DNA of 62,573 bases, the filler included, from Intoshia linei (Eukaryota; Animalia; Orthonectida), in the NCBI GenBank assembly GCA_001642005.1. It is 6 parts of 6 records of this genome, joined end to end, with 100 filler letters (N's around TTAATTAATTAA, not from the genome) between each part and the next. Parts side by side here need not be neighbours in the genome. Positions count along the whole stretch, not along the records: positions 38,769 to 60,892 come from LWCA01000605.1; 5 more parts are not named here. One strand, 5' to 3'. This document shows positions 38,601-61,939 of the stretch, in pieces; position 1 is the first letter of the stretch; every line of letters starts with the position of its first letter. The notes below the pieces were generated by a model that was not told the origin of the DNA, searched no databases, and saw nothing but the letters and a program-made list of their open reading frames with translations. Made by a program: the position numbers and the translations under genes.

Positions 38601-40435
38601 TCATATATAAGTACTGCTAAATTACCTATATTGTGAATAGAAATAAGTTAAGAATAAATAAAAACTGCNNNNNNNNNNNNNNNNNNNNNNNNNNNNNNNN
38701 NNNNNNNNNNNNTTAATTAATTAANNNNNNNNNNNNNNNNNNNNNNNNNNNNNNNNNNNNNNNNNNNNTTAATAAAATATTTCGGAAAAAAAATATATGA
38801 ATATTAAAATGCTTTTTTGACCATGAAATCGTTTTATTCGGATTGAAATTTTTTATGTGTGTTAACAGGATACAACTGTACCACCTGTAAATTTTTTAAA
38901 ATTCTAGGGCTGTTTTCAAAAAAAAAAGAAAGGGAATTTGGGGTTTTGGACATGAAGGTATAATTTTTTTAAATTTAAATTTATGATAATGTTTATGATT
39001 TTAAAATCCGCATCAGTGTATACATTTTTTTAATTTCTCCAACTCGTTTGATTTTTAAAAATAGGGACAACTGGAGTTTTTGACCTGTAAGATGTGAAAT
39101 TAGGAGATTGAAATATATCTTAATATACGTCCCGAAAAAAACTGTAATTGAAATGTGGTCTTTAAAAAATTTTAAAACGGGTAATTATTCAAATAAAGTA
39201 TAACAGACAGACACACACAAACAAAAATAGCATAGCGTTTTATATAAGTTAGGATCAGTGTTTCCCAACCTTTTTTACTACATTACCCATATTAAAGTAC
39301 AATTATACTTAGTTTGATATTACCCACAATATTTTTTAACTGCATATTGGAAGGTCAGGTTATAATAAGAACAAGCCACATAAATTTTTTAAAAAACTAA
39401 TTTTATAAAATAATAAAATAAAGTCATTTATTTGTTTTATAAGGCTGATTTTATTAAAAAAAAAAGGGGAAATTTTTTTTTATTTTTTTCCATGTCAAAA
39501 TATTTGATACAAAATTCCACTTTTACCTATTTTTAAAACTTGACAAATTACTACTTTTTAAAGTAGAATATTTTTGATCTTTTATAAAATAGTTTATGCA
39601 ATTTTATAAATCTTGCGTTATTATTTTTCATGGATTTTTCTTTTTAGGGTTGGTAAAACTGGATTTTTCTTTTTAAAGTTTCGCATTTGAGTAAAAATGG
39701 TTCAATTTTTAAAATTTAGTAAAAAATTTCTGAGAAATTACGTAAATCAGGAATTAAATTGTATATTTGATGAATTTACAAATTTGACGGCCTCTGATAT
39801 TTGAATTTCAGAACACGAATTTCACAGAAAATCATAACATTAAGTTAACTTAACTGTTAAGGCTTAACATAATTTGCATTTTTGTATACATGATGTATTA
39901 GAAATGACTTGCTAGACTCAAGTTTGATAAAACATATTTGTCCGGGCTGTGAAGTTGTTTGAAAATGAAATCACCATGGATAGTAATTAGGTACATACTG
40001 AATAATTATTACTGATTCGTACCCTCACATGGATAAAAATTAACGCTTTTGGAGTAACCATTAGACTCTGACTCGCCGTAAATTCAAAATCACTAAAAAA
40101 GATTACTTAAGAAAACTATACCAAAACCGAAACTAAAAACTACAAACACATCATTACCGTACCAACAAAATTTAAAATGGTTTATATATTATCATTGCGA
40201 TAAAATGAAACACCACTGTACATTATCATTACCAAATCACCGTGCAAAACAATTTGTTACACAATAACAATAAAACAACAGGTCTTGTTGAACACTTGAA
40301 TGCAGCTACAAATTGTACAATACAAAATTTACCATTATGTTTATGATTTCATCATGGAATTTCCATGTTTATATACAAGTAAAGTTTAATTTAAATTCAT
40401 TTAAATATTTTTTAACGCATAACAAAAGAAAAAAT

Positions 40436-41227
40436 ATGACTGACCAAGAAAATAATATGCCAAATAATGATGAAAATGATACGCCAATTAAAGATGTAAA
40501 TGAGTTACTCAAAGCGGAATGTTTAGAAAATGACGAAAATATTCAAAAATTGACTGAAACTGTAATATATAAAATTGTAAATTTAATGTTATAATGATTT
40601 TAGGTTCAAAATTCGGTTGACAAGATACAAGGAAAATTTGATGAAACTTTCAATCGAATTATGGAAAAAAATATCCTTTTAATCATTTTATTATTTTTTA
40701 AGGTTGTGAGTATATTTATTTAGTTTTTATTTACAAAACTGCATAAAACTGTAATAGAAATTATCATTATTAATTAATACATTATTTTAATGTTTTAAAT
40801 TGTGAGTAAATTTCTTTTATGGTTTTTGGCATACTACTGAAATGATACTCTACGAAAATGTAGATATTTCATTTTTCAATATTTATAATTTCAAAAATTA
40901 CACTCGAATATTAAATATATATAGTATTACACTGTAATGCCCTTTTAAATTCAATTTTAAAATTATCCAATTTGGAATTGTATCTATTTTTAAGGCTATG
41001 AACTATATAATTTAAGAATAAAATTATATGTATTTTAATTTTTAAATCTTCTAGATTTTATTTTTTAGCAGAAAAATATATTTTTAATTTCCCTTAATTA
41101 TGCAATGGATATGATGAATCAAAAAATATCCGTCCTTGAAAATGATTTGAACAATATGATTGACACGAAACCAGATGGCAAGGATGCTTGCAATAATGTC
41201 GAAATCGAAAATCATGCACAAAATTAA
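40436..41227 (+). CDS. HSBP1: Heat shock factor-binding protein 1, exons 40436-40561, 40604-40670, 41106-41227
   Basis: Spliced product NIQKLTETVQNSVDKIQGKFDETFNRIMEKMDMMNQKISVLENDLNNMI aligns without gaps to the HSBP1 coiled coil ([48 protein letters not shown], from memory). Confidence 0.85.
40671..41105 (+). other. U12-type (minor spliceosome) intron with AT-AA termini
   Basis: 5' site ATATCCTTTT at 40671. Branch-site-like TTTCCCTTAAT at 41088-41098. 3' end GCAA at 41105. Removal restores the HSBP1 frame. Confidence 0.8.
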
Positions 41228-42584
41228 TTGTATGTGTTGAATATACTTTGTAGTTATTTTTTTGTGTATTTCTTATCTTACCATGCTAGGATCGCGTTTA
41301 ATCATATTTGATATGTATAAAAATAAGATATTTTGATGACTAGTTATTGACTAATTATAATTCCATAAATAATTATAAATATATGGAGCAAAAATTAATT
41401 ATACAATGTACAAACTTTTTGTATATTTTCCACATTTTAGAAATTTCTCAAAAAACTACACTATTAGGTTAATAATTACATTAATGTGTTTATTAGTGAA
41501 TTGATAAAAATTAGAAATCATCAAGAAAGAAGAAAACAATTAATGACAGTAGAACAGCGAAATCAACACCACAACAGATATGGATGCTTTATTCGATCTA
41601 TTAAATCATTAACGAAAGTGCTATTTTGAAATGAATTGATGACGTGGATGAGCAATAGCCGAATTTACCTTACTCGACCCCATCAAATAAAAAATAGTTT
41701 TTAAGTTTTTTTCAAAAATAACCTGACTTTGACTGTTTAAATTTGATACAAGAATGTCGTCGAAGCCACCGGAGAGGAGTCGTCGATTAATCCTTAGTTA
41801 TATAATATGCTTTGTTTGTCTGTGTGTGTCATTGTTTATTTCAATAACTACGAGTTTTAGAATTTTATAAAGTCCACATTTCAATTACAGTTTTTTCCGG
41901 GGATGTCAGCAAAATAAATTTTAACCTCTCAAACTCACATCTTACAGGTCAAAAAGCCCAATTGTCCTTTTTTTGAAAATCAAACGAGTTCGACAATTTA
42001 AAATAATATACACTATGATACGGATTTTAAAATCATAAAATTAAATTAAAAAAATATCTATAGTTATCATTATTCATTAGTAATCTCTAATTAATCTATA
42101 GGACCAAAACCCCAAATTACCCTTTTTTAATGAATACAGTCTTAGAATTTAAAAAAATTACCGGTGGTACAATTGTATCCTGTTAACACACACAAAAAAT
42201 TTGAATCTGAATAAGTGCTGCTTTCACTGTCAAAAAAGCATTTTAGTATTTATATTTTTTTTTTCGGAAATATTTTATAAAAACGAACAATGTGAAATAA
42301 TTAACTTAATTTTAATTTTCCGAAAATTAAAAAAAATGATTATTCTGATAGACCTTATTCCAATTAATATAAATATAAAATTTCAACCCCAGAAATCTAC
42401 GCATTCCCAGTGAAAAATAATTTTTAATATATTATCATCCAATATTTTTCAAATATTTCGATAAAATAAAAATTGAAAATGTAAATATTGATGCTACAAT
42501 TTTAAAAAAATGTGCATTAAACATCTACACATTTCCAATAAAGAAATATGGGTGAAAATCTATATAATTCATTCCTTCGGAATA

Positions 42585-45439: not shown

Positions 45440-48400
45440 TTAGTATACTTTGGATCGTAATATTTCAGGCTTCCACAAAATCGGATCTGTTTCTTGAGTC
45501 TAAATTAAATCATAAAATTTGATTAAAAATAAATTTACAGCTTCTTCATCAGGTTTATACATCTTAATTGTTTTGTCAGCATCACAGGTAATGAGTCTTT
45601 CTCCACTTTTATCAAATGTCATGGCAAATATTCCTGTTTCAGAGTCAATGGAACCTGGTTGAGCAGTTGATTGATATCGTTGAAAATTATAACCACTTTT
45701 CCAATCCCACAGGTATAGAGATCCATTGTCACCTTATAAAATATTTTAGTTATTATTTAGAAAAAAAAAAAAATTTTAAAACATTTACAATCCTAACTTG
45801 TATAAAAAGCTACGCGATTTTTGTTTGTCTGTCTTTGTGACTTTATTAAAATAACTACCACTCTTAGAATTTTTTAAAGACCACATTTTAATTACAGTTT
45901 TTTCCGGGACGTATAATAAGATAAATTTCAACCTCCCAATTTCACATCTTATGGGTCATAAACCCCTTTTTTCCCTCTTTTTGAAAATCAAACGAGTTGG
46001 AGAACTAAAAAAAATATATTAATATATAAAGGAATAAGACCACATTCCGTATTTTGTAAAAGAATCTTTTATAAACAGTGTAACATACAGAAAACCAAAA
46101 ATAAATTTGATTATAACAATTATACAATATATACTTCAATAATATTGAAAATAGCATTAAATAAAACCTAAACATTTTTTGCAATAAAAATTACCTGCAC
46201 TAGAGCAAAGGTAGCACCTTTTGCATCTCGTTGGCCACTTTTTTATGCCAAAAAATTTCACGGGCCCCGTTTTTTATAATTTAAACATGATACATTTCAT
46301 TTTTGACTCAAGTAAAACGGTTCTAATATATTCAACAAAACATAATCCAGGGCGATCTGAAAATTCAGTATTAAAATAATTATAATGAGCCAATTATAGT
46401 AGAAAATGTTTAAAAGGGTGTTTAAAACTTAAAAAATTTATATATCTGCTCAAAGGGCCACCTAAATTATTCTGTTGGCCGATCCTCTGCACTACAAATT
46501 TGAAACTAAATTTTAATGAGTAAGTTTGATCCGAGGGCGGACCGATTTAAAAATTATTTTGCTAAAAATGCATGCCTGTTTGTTACATTTATCTAATTTA
46601 TTTACGTAATAGGCGTAGTTTTAAAAACATCAATTTCTAATACAAGCTTTCGTGAATGAGATTTTATCGTGTATTTAATTTTCAGAAATTGAGTTCTTAA
46701 GGGTCAAAAACCCCAATTATTTCTATTTTTAAATATTAAACGAGTTGTAGAATTTTATCAAATATAAACGTTACAATTATAGTCTATAACTTATAGTTAA
46801 TACAGATTTTAACAGCATAATTTTTTTCTGGGATTCGCGTTTTTATGAGGATGTAGTAACGTTGCTATGCAATTATGACGAGCTAACAAGTAGCTTAGTT
46901 GTACTGAATTGGTTGATGGTTGTTAGTAAAATATTAATTTGGTATCTAAAATGTATTTATATCTAAGACATATTTTGATTATAAAAGTGCTTTTTGGCAT
47001 GAAGGCGTCACTTAGTGAAATCAAAAATGTTTGTAGTAATATATGAAGATAACTGTATGAACTGTAAATTTTTTTGTAAAGTTCTAGTATAATTTTCATT
47101 TTTTAAAAAAAAGGTAATTTGGGGTTTTGGCCCTGAAGATATATTTTTTTTAAATTTAAATTTATGATATTTTTTTAAATTCTAAAACTCGTTTGATTTT
47201 CAAAAAAAAAAATAATTTGGGTTTTTGATCGGTAAGATGTGAGTTTCTGAGATTGAAATTTATCTTACTTTTATCCCGAAAAAAACTATAATAGATACGT
47301 GGAATTGTTAAAATTCTAAGACTCTTATTTATTGAAATAAACGATAGCACAGACACATAAATGGTTATATATAAATAAGGATATGTAAAATTATACCTCC
47401 AGAAACAAAAACATTATCTTGATTTATAGCTAACGCGTTTATTATGACATTGTGACCATTCATATTATGTATAAAATTTCCTTCCGGGAAAGTCCAAAGT
47501 TTTATATTATCAGGAGACGCGGATGCCATCATTTTACTAAAGAAATAATCAATATGAAATATAAATCTAATAAAAAATAAATTTACTATGTTGGATGTAA
47601 AACAATATCTCTAACACTTTTTTTATGGTTTGTCAATGTACACATTGATTTTCCAGAAGAAATATCCCAAAGTCGAATTGTTGAATCATGACTAGCCGTA
47701 ATTATCTATATATTAAATAATTAAATAACAAATCGCTACAAACTTGTGGTTCAGTTGATTGACATCTTACAGCAGCTATAGTATTAGTGTGTCCAGTTAA
47801 GGTATAAATAGGGGCTTTCGTTCTAATGTCCCAAACCTAATATTAAATAAATTAATTTTATACCGATAAATTAAATTATTTTTTAATTTCAACCATAAAA
47901 TTACCCTGGCCGTTGCATCTCGAGCACCAGTTACCATAACATCTAAATATGGATGCAAAGCAATGCAATAAACACCACTCAAGTGACCATGATAGTGCCT
48001 AATAACCTAAATTAAATAGAAAAAACCCAAAAATAGTAATACCTTGTTGCATTCCAAATCCCAACATTTTACCATTTTGTCTTCTCCGACTGAAAACATG
48101 TAAGGGTGCCTTGAACTAATTTCTATACCCCTAACTGCATTTATATGTCCAGTAAGCGAGAGTTTTAATTTTCCTGTAGCCATATCCCAAATCTAATATA
48201 GATTAAGACATACTTACCATGTTTACCTTTATGAGTCGATCTCCTGCCCCAGTTGCAAACCACTCATTACCAGGTTCCACTGCAACAGATCTAACCCACC
48301 CCAAGTGACCACTTATAACTCGATACAATTTCCAAGGTGAGTGCCACGTAGGTTTGGGCATTACGGGGGCTCTTCGTGGTACCAGAGCCTGCTTATCGCC

Positions 48401-49788
48401 AATTTTCGTTAAAATCATTGCATTTGCAGCGTTCATTTTTTTATGTGTTGTTTCTGTTTGATCTTTCAAAACCAATTCTTTAGATCTATAAAATAATGAC
48501 TTTTTAAAATATAATATACAATACTGTTCCCCTCCGCCAAAATTGCGATTTGTATAATTTTGATATAATCGATAATAAGTAACCATAGTAATTTGTATAA
48601 ATGTGTATACCTTTTTCCCTCTTACCCCTATCAAAAAAAATGTAATGTAAATTCGACAATGTAGAGATTACTGTAAAAATTTACTTTAAAAAAAATGGGC
48701 CATTTCACTGTAATCCCTATTTATATAAAATTTTATATCTGTTAGCGTTTATTTAAAAAATTAAGTCGCAGAATTTAAAAAATCCAATTTCTAATACATT
48801 TTTTCACGGGTTGTTTCTATATCTAAGTTTTATTTTCCTAAATTGAGTTGTTCAGGGTGAATAATTCAATTTACCCTTTTTTTTATAAATAAAATCAGAC
48901 CTAAAATTAAAAAAAAATAATATATTCTGGAACACGTTGGAATTCATCATCATTGTCGTAAATATCAACCTCAACAAAAGGCCTTTTCAAAATAAAAACC
49001 CCACCTTATCCTTTTTTAAAAATATAAAGTCCTAGAATTTAAAAAAAAATTAAAACTAATATTGTCATATCCAGTTAACACAATCAAAAAATTTTAATCT
49101 GAAAAGTGACGCCTTCACGTCAAAAAAGTACTTTAATAATCATTTATTAATTAACAAAGTTAAATCAAAAATTTAAAATAATTAACGGTACTATAATTAA
49201 AAAAAAATGATTATTGTAATGCAGCTTATTCCATTTGATATATATACAAAATTTACAAAAGCTAGCTTGTTTTCGTACAAAGTACATAATAGGCAAGCTA
49301 GTTTCCGATATAAATAAGTTCAATTATTGAATACGTGGTGTTTTCATTTTCAATTTTTTTCTTAGATTCTAAAAATATTTTTACACTAAATGAAAACTTT
49401 TAATTTAAAAATCTTACCAAACGTACTCTTTTTGACGAGAGCACTCTCTCCATATTCACTTCTAATTTTACTATTTTGCAATAAATTAAAGCTAAAATTA
49501 AAATTAATAAAAAAAACTTAACAAAGTGTATAATCTGAATTATGAAAATATTCAAAATACAAAAACCTTTTAATATCTTCCTGAAAAATTTTATTGTGAT
49601 CATAAGCAAAAAGATCATGAGTACGTTTCAATGATCGATAAACCAATGTATGAAGCGAATGTTTAGGAACATCCTATATAAAATGGTAATATAAAGTAAT
49701 AATAATAAACAACAAATGATGTTTGATTAAATATTTTCAATATTAATTGAAAAAAAGTAAAATATATAAAGTTGATGAAATATACCAT
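45440..49788 (-). CDS. PLRG1: Pleiotropic regulator 1 / Prp46 WD40 splicing factor, multi-exon
   Basis: M|[83 protein letters not shown] and DPILWKPEI. Confidence 0.95.
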
Positions 49789-51342: not shown

Positions 51343-52249
51343 TTACTAAAAAATCATGTGTACTATTTAAATAAACATTGTACAATGTTAATATACTGTT
51401 GAGGCAAAAGCTATATAATTATAATAGCCTGAGCACCATTTTTCATATGCGAGAACTTTATGTCGATTTGATCATTAGGTAGCTGTATTTGAAAAATTAT
51501 TATAATTATTTACTTTTTCATTTTTAATTTGAATCCACCATTTGAAAAATATTGGTTGATAATATATTAAAAATTATTTTTCACCGGGAATGCGTAGATT
51601 TCTCGGGTCAAAATTTTATATTGATAGTAACTGGAATAAGCTGTATCAGAATAATCCTTTATTTTAATTTTAGAACCGTTAATTATTTCAAATTTTTTGT
51701 TTTAATAAAATAGCTTCAAAATAAAAAAAAATGATTATTAAAGTGCTTTTTGACCATAAAGACATTATTTAATCGGATTAAATTTTTTTGTGTGTGTTAA
51801 CTGGATATAATTGTATCACCCGTAATTTTTTTTAAATTCTAGGGCTGTTTGCATTTTTTAAAAAAAGAGTAATCTAGGTTTTTGACCGTGAAAATTACTA
51901 TTTATAATAATGCTTATGAATTTAAAAACTATTCCAGAATTTATGTTGTTTTAAAATTTAAATTCTAGGACTTTCTTAATTTTTACAAAAAATGGTAATT
52001 TGTGGTTTTGGCCGTGTAAATAATTCTAGGATGGGTTTGAATTTAAAAACAAAGGATAATTCGGATTTTTACCCTTGAAGGACTCTATTTCTGAAATTGA
52101 AATTTGCGATAAAAGACACTCTGGAAAAACTGTTTTAGAAATATGGAATTTGTAAAACTCGACTCCCCTTATTTTCTTAAATGTGCAGACCAATTTTTAA
52201 TCATTTTACTTTATATAAGTAAGGATATGAATAAAAATTATTATTTATT

Positions 52250-55280: not shown

Positions 55281-58067
55281 ATGGTCATATATTATATTTA
55301 TCAATTTAAATTTTTTTAGATTTCTGGATTTGATATTGGACAAGAAATTCTTGAATCTATACAAAAAGTTTATAGAAAAAAATTAAGATATGTTATTTTA
55401 CGATTTGATGATAAATATCAAAATTTACTTTTAATTAAAACTGCTAAATATGAAAAATTTGGTATTTATTATAATAATATGTACATTAGGGCTATTCTAA
55501 ATCTAAATTTGAATTTTTTTTGAAATTTAAAAAAGCCATATATAATAATCTCTATTTAATTTGGTGTAGAATGATATAATTTTTTTCATCACAAAAAACC
55601 TGCGCGTATTTACCTTTTTCTGTTTTCCAAACATTTTTCATAGTAAAAAAATATAACATAAATCATGTGACATTAATTATATTAATTAAAAAAATCAATA
55701 AAAAATCGTTTATTTTAGACACAGTTCACGGACAAACTTTTCGTCATTTTTAAAAAAATTATATACAATGTAATTTAAAAAAAAGACATGAATTTATATG
55801 AATTGAGTCAAAATATTTTAAATACTTCAACTCAAATATTTTTGAAGTACTATTGTAAAAAAATAATTTAGTCAAGTTTATATTATTAAAAGTAAAAGGA
55901 ATTTAAAAATGATAAAATTTAATTCATCATTTTGTGAATATTTTATTAACGTAGATACTATTTATATTTTTTAACTATTTTTTTACATGAGTACATTTTT
56001 ACATAGAATATTGGTACGAATTTAAATTAAATTTAATTTAACAAATAAATATTAATTTAATTTGTTTATAGTTTTGGAACATATATTTTCAACTTTAATA
56101 GTTAATTTACTAATATTAATTAATGTCGAAAATGTTCTTTCACAAGGTTGAATAATCATTATTATACCGTTTGATTTAATAAAATATGAAAATATTTCGA
56201 ATATTTCTTGTAAAGTTTCAAATGATGAAATCATTTCAATATTTGACATTTTTACAAGTTTTATAAATTTGAAAAATTAATATAAATTAACAATTGATAT
56301 TATTTAAATTTATTAACACGGCAGCGGATTATTAACATTTTCAATAAACTAACTGAGAAATCATAAAATTAAAACTTTAAATTTCAAGACGGGGGGTTTT
56401 TTTAGATAAAAATTAAAAATATTAATATCATTGTGAAGCAAATTAAGCGGTGCTCATATTCTATATATTTTATTTTTATATTAGAAAAATGGAATAGCCC
56501 TATTATACAAAGTAGATTCATACCTGACCTATATAATATGCTAAGCGATTTTTGTTTGTGTGTGTGTCCAGCTTTATTTCAATAACTACCAGTCTTTTAA
56601 TTTTATAAAGTCCACATTTCAATTACAGTTTTTTCCGGGGGTGTTCGCAAACAAATTTCAACCTTACCAAACTCACATCTTACGAATCAAAAACCCAAAT
56701 TGTCCCTCTTTTTGAAAATCAAACGAGTTGGAGAAATTAAAAAAATATATATGCTGATATGCATTTTAAAATCCTAAACATTATCATATATTTAAATTCA
56801 AAAAAATTATATCTTCAGGGTCAAAATCCCAAATTACCCTTATTTTTTTAATGAAAACAGCCCTATCATTTCAAAAAATTGACAGGTTGTACAGTTATAT
56901 CATGTTAATACACACAGAAAATTTCAATCAGAATAAGTGACGACTTCACAATCAAAAAAGCATTTTAGTATGCATATTTTTTTTATAAAATCTGTGTTCG
57001 TTGTAAATTACCACGCAATTTAATTTTTCGGCCCAAATAAATATTTGTTGCTAATATAATGCAAATGGAGTCTGATATCCCATCTCTATAATCTATTTTT
57101 AATGACAATCATAAACAAAAGTTACCCATTTTATTTTTTACTAATTAAAAATCAATGTATTACGTTTTTTATCAATTTTTAATAGATACATTATTATTAT
57201 ACATTTATTATATTAAATTAGATGGCTTTAATTAAAAATAATTACTACCATCAATAATTAATATCATTTTTCACTTTATTCTATTTTTGTAAATTTGTCT
57301 GTAAATCTATAAAATATTTCATGAACCCCTGGGGTCCACATGAACCCGTTGATAATGGTTGGTGTATATTTCTTTGTCATGTATTATTCAAAAACTAAAA
57401 ATAACAAGAAATATGACAATTTAATCGTTTTTATTTAAAAAAATGAAATTCTGTTAGCAAGTGTATTATTATGGGAAAAATTCCTTATTAGTTTCCAAAT
57501 TTGGAATTCCGTTAATAAGGATAATAATAAGGATTTAACGGTATTTTGATCAAAAATAAATTTTTTTTATGAATTTAATATCCTTTTCAACCATTAAGTA
57601 CAATATGTATTTTTAATATTATTGGCATACGTTTTACAATTTTTATTATTAGGGCTGTTTCCTAGAATTTTTATACATTTATTTTTTAGATAAATCTACA
57701 TTTTCCGAAATTGTTGATTATTACACCTCTCAATGTCCAAAATCTTTCTTGTATAGTTTTTTTCATTTTGAATACAATAATAAATCCGGTCATTTCAGAA
57801 ACCGAGTTGCCTGTTTAAAAATGTAATTTAATCATGTTACGCATGTCACAGAAATTTAATATTTAATTATTTAAATTATAAATTTTAAAAACTAGTGGAA
57901 TACCAGAACGTGCCGAAATTCGAGAAAAAATGATTTATGCTTCATCATACAAACATTTACAACAAGTTACAAAATGTAACACATATATTGATTGCACAGA
58001 TATATCCTCACTAGAATATGATAATATCGTCGAAATGTTGATTGAAAAATGTGAAAAATATGAATGA
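55281..58067 (+). CDS. ADF/cofilin-family protein, exons 55281-55283, 55320-55461, 57690-57822, 57896-58067
   Basis: M|ISGFDIGQEILESIQKVYRKKLRYVILRFDD...LYSFFHFEY...RNRVACLKIGIPERAEIREKMIYASS...IDCTDISSL. It has an ATG-only first exon, as is common in ADF/cofilin genes. Confidence 0.88.
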
Positions 58068-59921: not shown

Positions 59922-61939
59922 AAAAGTTTGAAAGTATATATATAATATTTTTTAAATTCTCCAACTTGTTTAATTTTTAAAAAGAGGGACAATTTGGGTT
60001 TTTGACCCGTAATATGTGAGTTTGAAAGGTTGAAATTATGTTTGCGAACACCCGGAAAAAAGTGTAATTGAAATGTGGACTTATAAAATTATAATACAGG
60101 TAGTTATTTAAATAAAGCTGAATACACACATAGACACACACAAACAAAAATCGCGTAGCATATTATATAAGTTAGGATATAAATCAGGACAAAAATATAA
60201 TATATATTGTATAAAGGTCGCTAAAGAGCAGATCCTATGAGTAATAGACCTATAAAGTTTTAAAAAAAATTTGAAAACGATGCGTAGTGTTATATAGCCG
60301 CTAGCCACGACTCCATGGCTTTTGACTTGATATTTTAAATTTAAATTTAAACAAAATGGTTAAGATATTCAAGAATATAATTTTTTAATGATTAATTTGG
60401 AAAATTGAGGCACAATTTTATAAAAATTTTGTATACCCGAAGAGAGGTTTTAGGGTACTGTATTGTAAGTTCGGTAGTGTCAAATATGTACTAGTGGTCC
60501 AAATGGGTTTTATTAAATATTTTGAGATAATTTGATGTGTTTGACTACCTCGGTATTTTTCTTTAAAGCCGTGGTTCCAGATTAAAGTAGTGTACCCCAT
60601 TTTAAAATATTTATATTTTTTTGAATTCAAAGGCAACATGAAATATAAAACATTTATGAAAAAATTAAGTTTTTTTTCAACAGATATAGTATAATTATAA
60701 TATAATTATGTATGATCGAGATTTCACTGTACAGTCAATTATACATACAGCAAAATTGTAAATTTAACTTTAGTACACATAGATAATCAAAACTTCATAT
60801 TACATTTTAAGTTTAGTCTAAACTTTAAATAAATCTGTTGAAATAAAAATTAATATTTTTAATAAATTATTTTATACTAAATAATGTTGAAANNNNNNNN
60901 NNNNNNNNNNNNNNNNNNNNNNNNNNNNNNNNNNNNTTAATTAATTAANNNNNNNNNNNNNNNNNNNNNNNNNNNNNNNNNNNNNNNNNNNNAAAAGTTT
61001 ATACCCTAAGACATCGAGTTTTCATACAATATAAGGTAATTTAAAGTGTTTATAATATAAACTTTATATCAATGATTTATCAAAATATTTTTCTTACGGC
61101 ATTCTTACTACATAATGTTCTCTACACGGAACTACTAATTTCATTGATGAATCAGATAATTTTTTAAATATTATTAACAATGTTATGCTATCGCTGAAAA
61201 TGTGTAAAATAATATTGATTCCCTAATAATTCTAATTATTGTCTAATATTAAAAATATACCGTATGAGATACCAGATCAATTTGAAAACTAACAAATTCT
61301 ATTTAAAATATTTATTATTTATAAGATTTCTGTTTTCCAATTTATTATTAGTAATATAATTAATTTAAAAAATTAAGAACCACTGCCCTAATGCATAATA
61401 TTAATATCATAATGCTTGTAATTTCATACCGATAAACATAACAAAAATTAACTTTATTAACTTTTGATAGTTTAACATAGTAGTTAATTTTTTTACTACA
61501 ATTTGACAGTGTTTTTATAGCTAGTAGACAATTTATCTATAAAAAATATAATTATACTAGGGCGCGTCACATAATTAGCATAAAATATTTTATATAATGT
61601 TGGATGAGTTAAGTGTATATAATTTTTGATATTGAAGATGAATCTATTAAATTATTTTTCCGTAATGTAGATGTGTATTTTCTATAACATGATTCCTGCA
61701 AATGTTCTTAATAGTTTTTGTAATTAATAATTATTAGAGAAGCATCAAACATTTTAAAAATTTTTGAAAATTTTAGGAAAAAAACTGAATTGACTAACAG
61801 AAAACCTAGACTAAAGTTAAATTTAAGAATTCCTAATATGTACGTAAATAAATATTTACATTGTACAATAACATTAACTATCAATATTGCAAATTAAAAT
61901 TTATACGTTTACTTTAAAACGGTTTGAATTTTTGCACAA

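Follow-up and report, generated by a model that had tools for sequence, protein, structure and literature searches.

A U12-type AT-AA intron in a misannotated, putatively HSBP1-like gene of the orthonectid Intoshia linei, with no nested splicing among its assembled RNA junctions

The second intron of a short gene of the orthonectid Intoshia linei is a genuine U12-type intron with AT-AA termini, and the gene that carries it, whose product appears to be HSBP1-like, is misannotated in the public record. An earlier note, made from the sequence alone, had proposed that this intron is a twintron, in which a U2-type GT-AG intron nested inside the U12-type intron yields a protein isoform with a 24-aa insert; the RNA at hand does not support that proposal. 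In the mRNA form that was assembled at high depth in one of two public runs, intron 2 is excised as one piece, and it can also stay unspliced, in which case the retained form meets a stop at 40721. Overall, we consider it probable that the locus is a three-exon, HSBP1-like gene of about 104 codons, from which the U12-type AT-AA intron is excised whole, in which the nested pair does no work at visible levels, and for which the deposited model is wrong.

The window is the whole stretch of DNA that was analysed (62,573 nt, filler included), and the gene lies in a piece of it from record LWCA01000605.1 of assembly GCA_001642005.1 (22,124 nt, 25% G+C). When exon 1 was used as a query, it returned a single database protein at 100% identity, the Intoshia linei hypothetical protein A3Q56_04620, which is encoded on the same record. 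The RNA data are assembled contigs of two small public runs from one study, here called X1 and X2; their run type is absent from the record, and contigs of this kind drop rare isoforms and give no reliable levels. The layout of the gene is as follows, with positions counted along the window.

40436-40561, plus strand: exon 1, 42 codons from the ATG at 40436, placed by translation and by the X2 contig
40448-40503, plus strand: 24-nt tandem repeat in exon 1, 2.3 copies, 84% matches
40562-40603, plus strand: intron 1, 42 nt, GT..AG (GTAATA...TTTTAG), phase 0, U2-type
40604-40670, plus strand: exon 2, VQNSVDKIQGKFDETFNRIMEK and the first base of a Met codon
40671-41105, plus strand: intron 2, 435 nt, U12-type, AT-AA termini, phase 1
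40671-40679, plus strand: U12-type 5' splice site ATATCCTTT, 9/9 to consensus
40721-40723, plus strand: in-frame TAG, met upon retention of intron 2, truncated product of about 81 aa
41090-41098, plus strand: U12-type branch site TCCCTTAAT, core CCTTAAT
41106-41227, plus strand: exon 3, (M)DMMNQKISVLENDLNNMID...AQN, with the stop TAA at 41225-41227

The tandem repeat in exon 1 codes for an Asn/Asp-rich N-terminal tail.

Both runs behave as RNA, since splicing is visible in their contigs and some of the stretch outside the gene has no coverage. The joint that removes intron 1 (40561^40604) is present in contigs of both. The X2 contig (351 nt, depth 1,693) covers 40429-40561, 65 nt of exon 2 and 41104-41256, in that order; its positions on the record are contiguous, and it continues past the end of exon 3. 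Its second joint skips 435 nt with two ambiguous bases, and can be placed at 40668^41104, 40669^41105 or 40670^41106. We read it as 40670^41106, because only that placement has splice signals, and these are the U12-type ones. Together, this spliced contig and one intron fragment (40731-40913) account exactly for the depth of each bin in X2, at 1,693 for the former and 3.6 for the latter. Over 40671-40711 or 41015-41103, the segments that any nested-spliced RNA must hold, there are no X2 contigs.

The X1 contig (1,304 nt, depth 471) begins at 39788 and lacks intron 1, but is colinear with the genome over 40604-41133 and thus retains all 435 nt of intron 2. Its end at 41133 coincides with the final 31-mer that is unique to the retained path, a hint that X1 holds the spliced path as well; we do not rely on this point. 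The earlier note had suggested that competition between the two spliceosomes could switch the protein between an intact and a coil-broken or membrane-associated form. In X1, where the intron stays unspliced, the neighbouring U2 intron 1 has been removed and intron 2 is kept whole with its nested sites unused, which speaks against such competition. The junctions that the note had singled out for counting gave the same picture on contigs: 40670^41106 and the unspliced form were found, and 40705^41069, 40705^41072 and any joint from 40702 were not among the joints listed for the X1 and X2 contigs. The X1 form (long leader, retained) and the X2 form (spliced) may represent two transcript forms or two sample states. 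Upstream of the ATG at 40436, at least 648 nt are covered by the X1 contig, in a region without depth in X2. Another X1 contig tracks exon 1 to 40553 and then, after a 1-nt deletion, continues as different sequence (TGAAACTTGTTGAAAATTTTG...); a related transcript and a partial match by chance are both conceivable.

The sequence signals of intron 2 point to the U12 type and its AT-AA subtype. From its first position, ATATCCTTT fits the U12-type donor pattern ATATCCTT. A U12-type branch site was expected to resemble TCCTTAAY and to lie about 8-20 nt from the 3' site without a pyrimidine tract in the interval; here the putative branch A (41097) is 8 nt ahead of the last base of the intron, and TATGCAA, with no intervening pyrimidine tract, fills the distance. 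The motif CCTTAAY is rare here, with four occurrences in 44 kb (both strands counted). The intron ends in AA at 41105, and its termini are therefore AT-AA rather than AT-AC, a combination reported as the most frequent non-canonical terminus of minor introns from animals and plants by a survey that included I. linei (PMC10639083). Its non-GT-AG junction was formed in the RNA-like X2 contig at the depth given above. The outer intron is in phase 1, splitting a Met codon as A/TG, and its excision gives ...IMEK-MDMM.... If minor splicing follows its established mechanism here, ATATCCTTT would be base-paired with U11 and TCCCTTAAT with U12, selection of the 3' site would depend on the short 8-nt spacing from the branch A, and the outcome would be an uninterrupted coiled coil across the join. 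The earlier note had called 40671-41105 a U12-type intron whose minor splicing gives a gap-free EK-MD, and on both counts it is borne out by the donor, the branch motif and the RNA-like junction.

At 435 nt, intron 2 is about eight times as long as the median intron of the species, which is 57 bp (PMC6543705). Its predicted fold is somewhat more stable than those of shuffled sequences (z = -2.73); in the minimum-energy fold, 40698-40703 pairs with 41092-41097, which may be chance. A repeat check found no other copies of the intron sequence in the piece. No snRNA genes were found in the 22-kb piece, the tRNA gene search found none, and Rfam returned no match at the gathering score; on exon 3, a SNORD116 match below that score (E 0.24) was taken as chance. 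One further ATATCCTT, at 47384 on the minus strand, falls in the neighbouring gene, within a GT-AG intron, and is incidental.

The nested splice is found in one place only, the deposited gene model, and in no listed contig joint. The model A3Q56_04620 (161 aa) reads ...FNRIMEK NILLIILLFFKV QKNIFLISLNYA MDMMNQK..., which corresponds exactly to the splice 40705^41069 (donor at 40706, acceptor ending at 41068). The nested splice of the earlier note is thus the same solution as that of the gene model, rediscovered from sequence alone. The two kept segments have 14% and 19% G+C, as against 18% for the whole intron and 28-34% for the exons, and the residues of the insert (I, L, F, N, K, Y) are the typical translation of AT-rich non-coding DNA. 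The model also starts at the ATG at 40337, 33 codons 5' of the ATG at 40436; the region 40337-40435 adds 33 residues of AT-rich translation to the GenBank model. Since the spliced X2 contig begins at 40429, only 7 nt 5' of the ATG at 40436, what is annotated as the N-terminus is probably untranslated leader. We take the model to be the output of an ab initio gene finder to which AT-AA termini were not available. Such a prediction would have bridged the non-GT-AG intron with the only in-frame GT-AG pair, gaining 24 intron-derived residues and an upstream start.

HSBP1 (PF06825) is a small coiled-coil partner of the heat-shock factor HSF1. The earlier note had named the gene HSBP1, and both halves of the protein appear to be HSBP1-like, with moderate support. 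Against A3Q56_04620, Pfam PF06825 scored 10.7 bits (cut-off 28.6) over profile positions 1-28 of 51; this weak match covers model residues 70-97 and stops at the insert, that is, at the last full codon of exon 2. With single exons, the Pfam search returned no match. In the ESM Atlas, where scores below 0.9 count as leads only, the top three clusters for residues 34-97 were HSBP1 (0.88, 0.87 and 0.85; 176-192 shared features), and the two nearest clusters for residues 122-161, which represent exon 3 alone, were also HSBP1 (0.88 and 0.88). Read by eye, the hydrophobic residues I, M, M, I, L, L and M keep to a 3/4 spacing over the U12 join. No relatives came from sequence searches: phmmer with A3Q56_04620 against 1.8 billion representatives returned itself alone with no significant homologue, and word-indexed searches with exon 1 and exon 3 returned the model itself or nothing. 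When the model and exons 2 and 3 were compared with PDB sequences, the matches were to Csn2 and a designed repeat protein and are ascribed to chance. A literature search for HSBP1 together with U12 or minor introns found no paper linking the two.

The nested sites themselves are real features of the sequence. All the features that the earlier note listed were confirmed at their coordinates and in their frames, as follows, together with a repeat that involves the donor region.

40703-40711, plus strand: two candidate U2 donors, AAG/GTTGTG at 40703 and GTT/GTGAGT at 40706, unused by RNA contigs
40780-40817, plus strand: 38-nt direct repeat, second copy, with 76% identity to 40684-40721 and with TTGTGAGTA at 40800
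41054-41071, plus strand: candidate U2 acceptors, a T-rich tract followed by TAG (last base 41068) and CAG (last base 41071), unused by RNA contigs

The acceptor region, TTTTTTAG/CAG at 41061-41071, carries U2-type signals, as does GTGAGT at 40706. Both donors and both acceptors are in phase 0, and by script all four of their combinations are open in frame; the kept segments translate to NILLIILLFFK(V) and (Q)KNIFLISLNYA. On the 5' side of the intron the frame closes at the TAG at 40721, and the TAG at 41066-41068 is also an in-frame stop, the final one ahead of exon 3. When the intron interior was shuffled 5,000 times with its dinucleotides preserved, 18% of the shuffles held some in-frame open GT..AG pair, as did 32% of 42,509 real 435-nt segments of the same piece with the same ends imposed; the mere existence of a nested intron is therefore ordinary. 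With a GTRAGT donor, such a pair was found in 0.06% of shuffles and 0.45% of real segments, and when the acceptor also had to be a YAG with 9 or more pyrimidines out of 11, there were no cases in either set. The rarity of the GTRAGT donor in these controls indicates that the quality of the nested sites is beyond what base composition explains. GTGAGT occurs seven times in 44 kb (both strands counted), and two of the seven are in intron 2, where TTGTGAGTA stands at 40704 and 40800, two copies within 96 nt. The site quality and the duplication of TTGTGAGTA hint at function or history. The donor region also resembles 41072-41088 over 17 nt, which was judged a chance match in A/T-rich sequence.

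The local U2 introns provide a yardstick. Seven were placed in the piece, one by RNA and six by exon-by-exon translation of a PLRG1/Prp46-like gene. Their donors are GTAATA, GTAAAC, GTATTA, GTAATT, GTTTGT, GTAAAT and GTATAA, with GTRAGT in none of the seven; the six that were measured are 34-68 nt long, and their acceptors are TAG behind a T-rich run. Compared with these, a nested intron of 363-369 nt with a GTGAGT donor would be atypical for the piece. Longer U2 introns do occur, as one intron of the PLRG1-like gene holds a copy of a dispersed repeat. The gene and the repeat are placed as follows.

45440-49788, minus strand: PLRG1/Prp46-like WD40 gene with very short GT-AG introns (34, 36, 68, 38 and 50 nt)
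41823-42500: dispersed repeat, about 680 nt long, with eight or more partial copies in the 22-kb piece at 77-84% identity, some within introns
38769-39197, 45842-46018, 47167-47342, 48995-49135, 51507-51855, 56561-56984 and 59945-60130: copies of this repeat

The dispersed repeat and its copies are very deep in the RNA-like contigs of both runs, with a summed depth of up to about 13,700.

Because the U12 junction alone was observed, the nested GT-AG pair is, by the reasoning of the earlier note itself, incidental. As contigs drop rare forms, low-level or conditional use of the nested sites could nevertheless occur, and several readings of the pair have to be weighed. That the nested sites are cryptic U2 sites, used at a low level or when minor splicing fails, and hence noise rather than a regulated isoform, is unlikely on present evidence. 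The sites look usable, and cryptic U2 sites near minor introns are known to be used mainly upon failure of minor splicing (reviewed in PMC8329584); such failure is the likeliest way in which the nested sites could ever act. Against this, X1 shows retention without nested splicing, and the local U2 introns are short and have donors of the GTAWWW type.

We regard it as decidedly unlikely that the nested pair is used in an unsampled stage or under stress, either as a coil-breaking switch of the prospero kind or as a first step that shortens the intron from 435 to 72 nt. Use of the pair would account for the unusual quality of the sites and for the duplicated TTGTGAGTA. The stricter claim, namely a true U2-within-U12 twintron from which the major spliceosome yields a coil-breaking, hydrophobic 24-aa insert in some stage or stress, is very unlikely. 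Its anatomy matches that of Drosophila prospero, a nested GT-AG pair in an AT-type U12 intron (PMC3564746), all four combinations of sites are in frame and open, and the site quality is far above chance. However, the nested junction is in neither run among the joints listed, X1 retains intron 2 whole although the neighbouring U2 intron has been removed, and the composition of the insert is intron-like. Moreover, the insert would interrupt the sole domain that Pfam can recognise, and it would make a poor membrane segment, because K, Q, K and N interrupt its hydrophobic stretches.

The copies of GTGAGT and the T-rich AG may also have a non-coding role or none, which we hold to be highly improbable as an account of the locus. 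The options include U1 binding that protects a long, AT-rich U12 intron from premature cleavage, stepwise splicing in which the nested intron goes first and leaves a 72-nt U12 intron, and duplication of a chance motif. The two TTGTGAGTA copies lie in the diverged 38-nt direct repeat, and the intron is about eight times as long as the species' median and folds somewhat better than its shuffles, all of which are consistent with such a role; the intermediate of stepwise splicing would bear the nested junction, which is unseen even where the intron accumulates. To a U12-to-U2 conversion caught midway, the other alternative of the earlier note, we give almost no credence: although nested introns have been proposed as conversion intermediates (PMC8329584; PMC3564746), and I. 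linei was chosen for a loss-versus-conversion analysis in a species sample that mixed heavy-loss and comparison species (PMC10639083), the U12 signals are perfect and in use, and conversion by way of the nested sites, 35 and 37 nt within the intron, would leave a fixed insertion of 24 aa midway along the coiled coil.

The preferred reading, a U12-type AT-AA intron excised whole from a misannotated gene, has consequences beyond the locus. The contigs give direct RNA evidence that minor-type (AT-AA) splicing operates in an orthonectid, whose genome is among the most reduced of animals. They also illustrate that annotation can hide minor introns, as the public protein holds 24 intron-derived residues and a probably false N-terminus; with its GT-AG workaround, the model could lead annotation-based surveys of minor introns to score intron 2 as major-type. 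For the twintron idea the outcome is negative, and the retained form in X1 versus the spliced form in X2 is a modest pointer to retention of a minor intron in what may be a heat-shock regulator.

Three kinds of known introns and one known protein family are useful for comparison. In the prospero twintron of Drosophila, a U2-type GT-AG intron lies inside an AT-type U12 intron, and the alternative protein is 29 aa longer (PMC3564746). The I. linei gene is alike in its outer AT-type U12 intron and its in-frame inner GT-AG pair, which would add 24 aa here as against 29 aa in prospero. It differs in that the outer intron is AT-AC there and AT-AA here, and in that both mRNA forms are made there in a regulated ratio, whereas the contigs here carry only the U12 junction and the unspliced form. 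Retention of minor introns is known as a regulatory step (Younis et al. 2013, PMC3728624). Similarly, intron 2 is retained in X1 and removed in X2, while the neighbouring U2 intron is removed in both; in contrast, the contigs give no levels and the samples are coded without condition, so that a regulatory role here would be hypothetical. With other AT-AA introns of the U12 type, intron 2 shares the donor ATATCCTTT, the CCTTAAY near the 3' end, the lack of a pyrimidine tract and the removal of a non-GT-AG intron in RNA; the setting is different, namely a tiny, very AT-rich genome with a median intron of 57 bp, in which this one measures 435 nt. As for HSBP1 (PF06825), the I. linei protein is very divergent and carries an Asn/Asp-rich N-terminal extension with a tandem repeat, whereas it shares the small size and the one long predicted heptad-repeat helix, and its partial, sub-threshold Pfam match and its nearest ESM Atlas clusters may be leads to the HSBP1 family.
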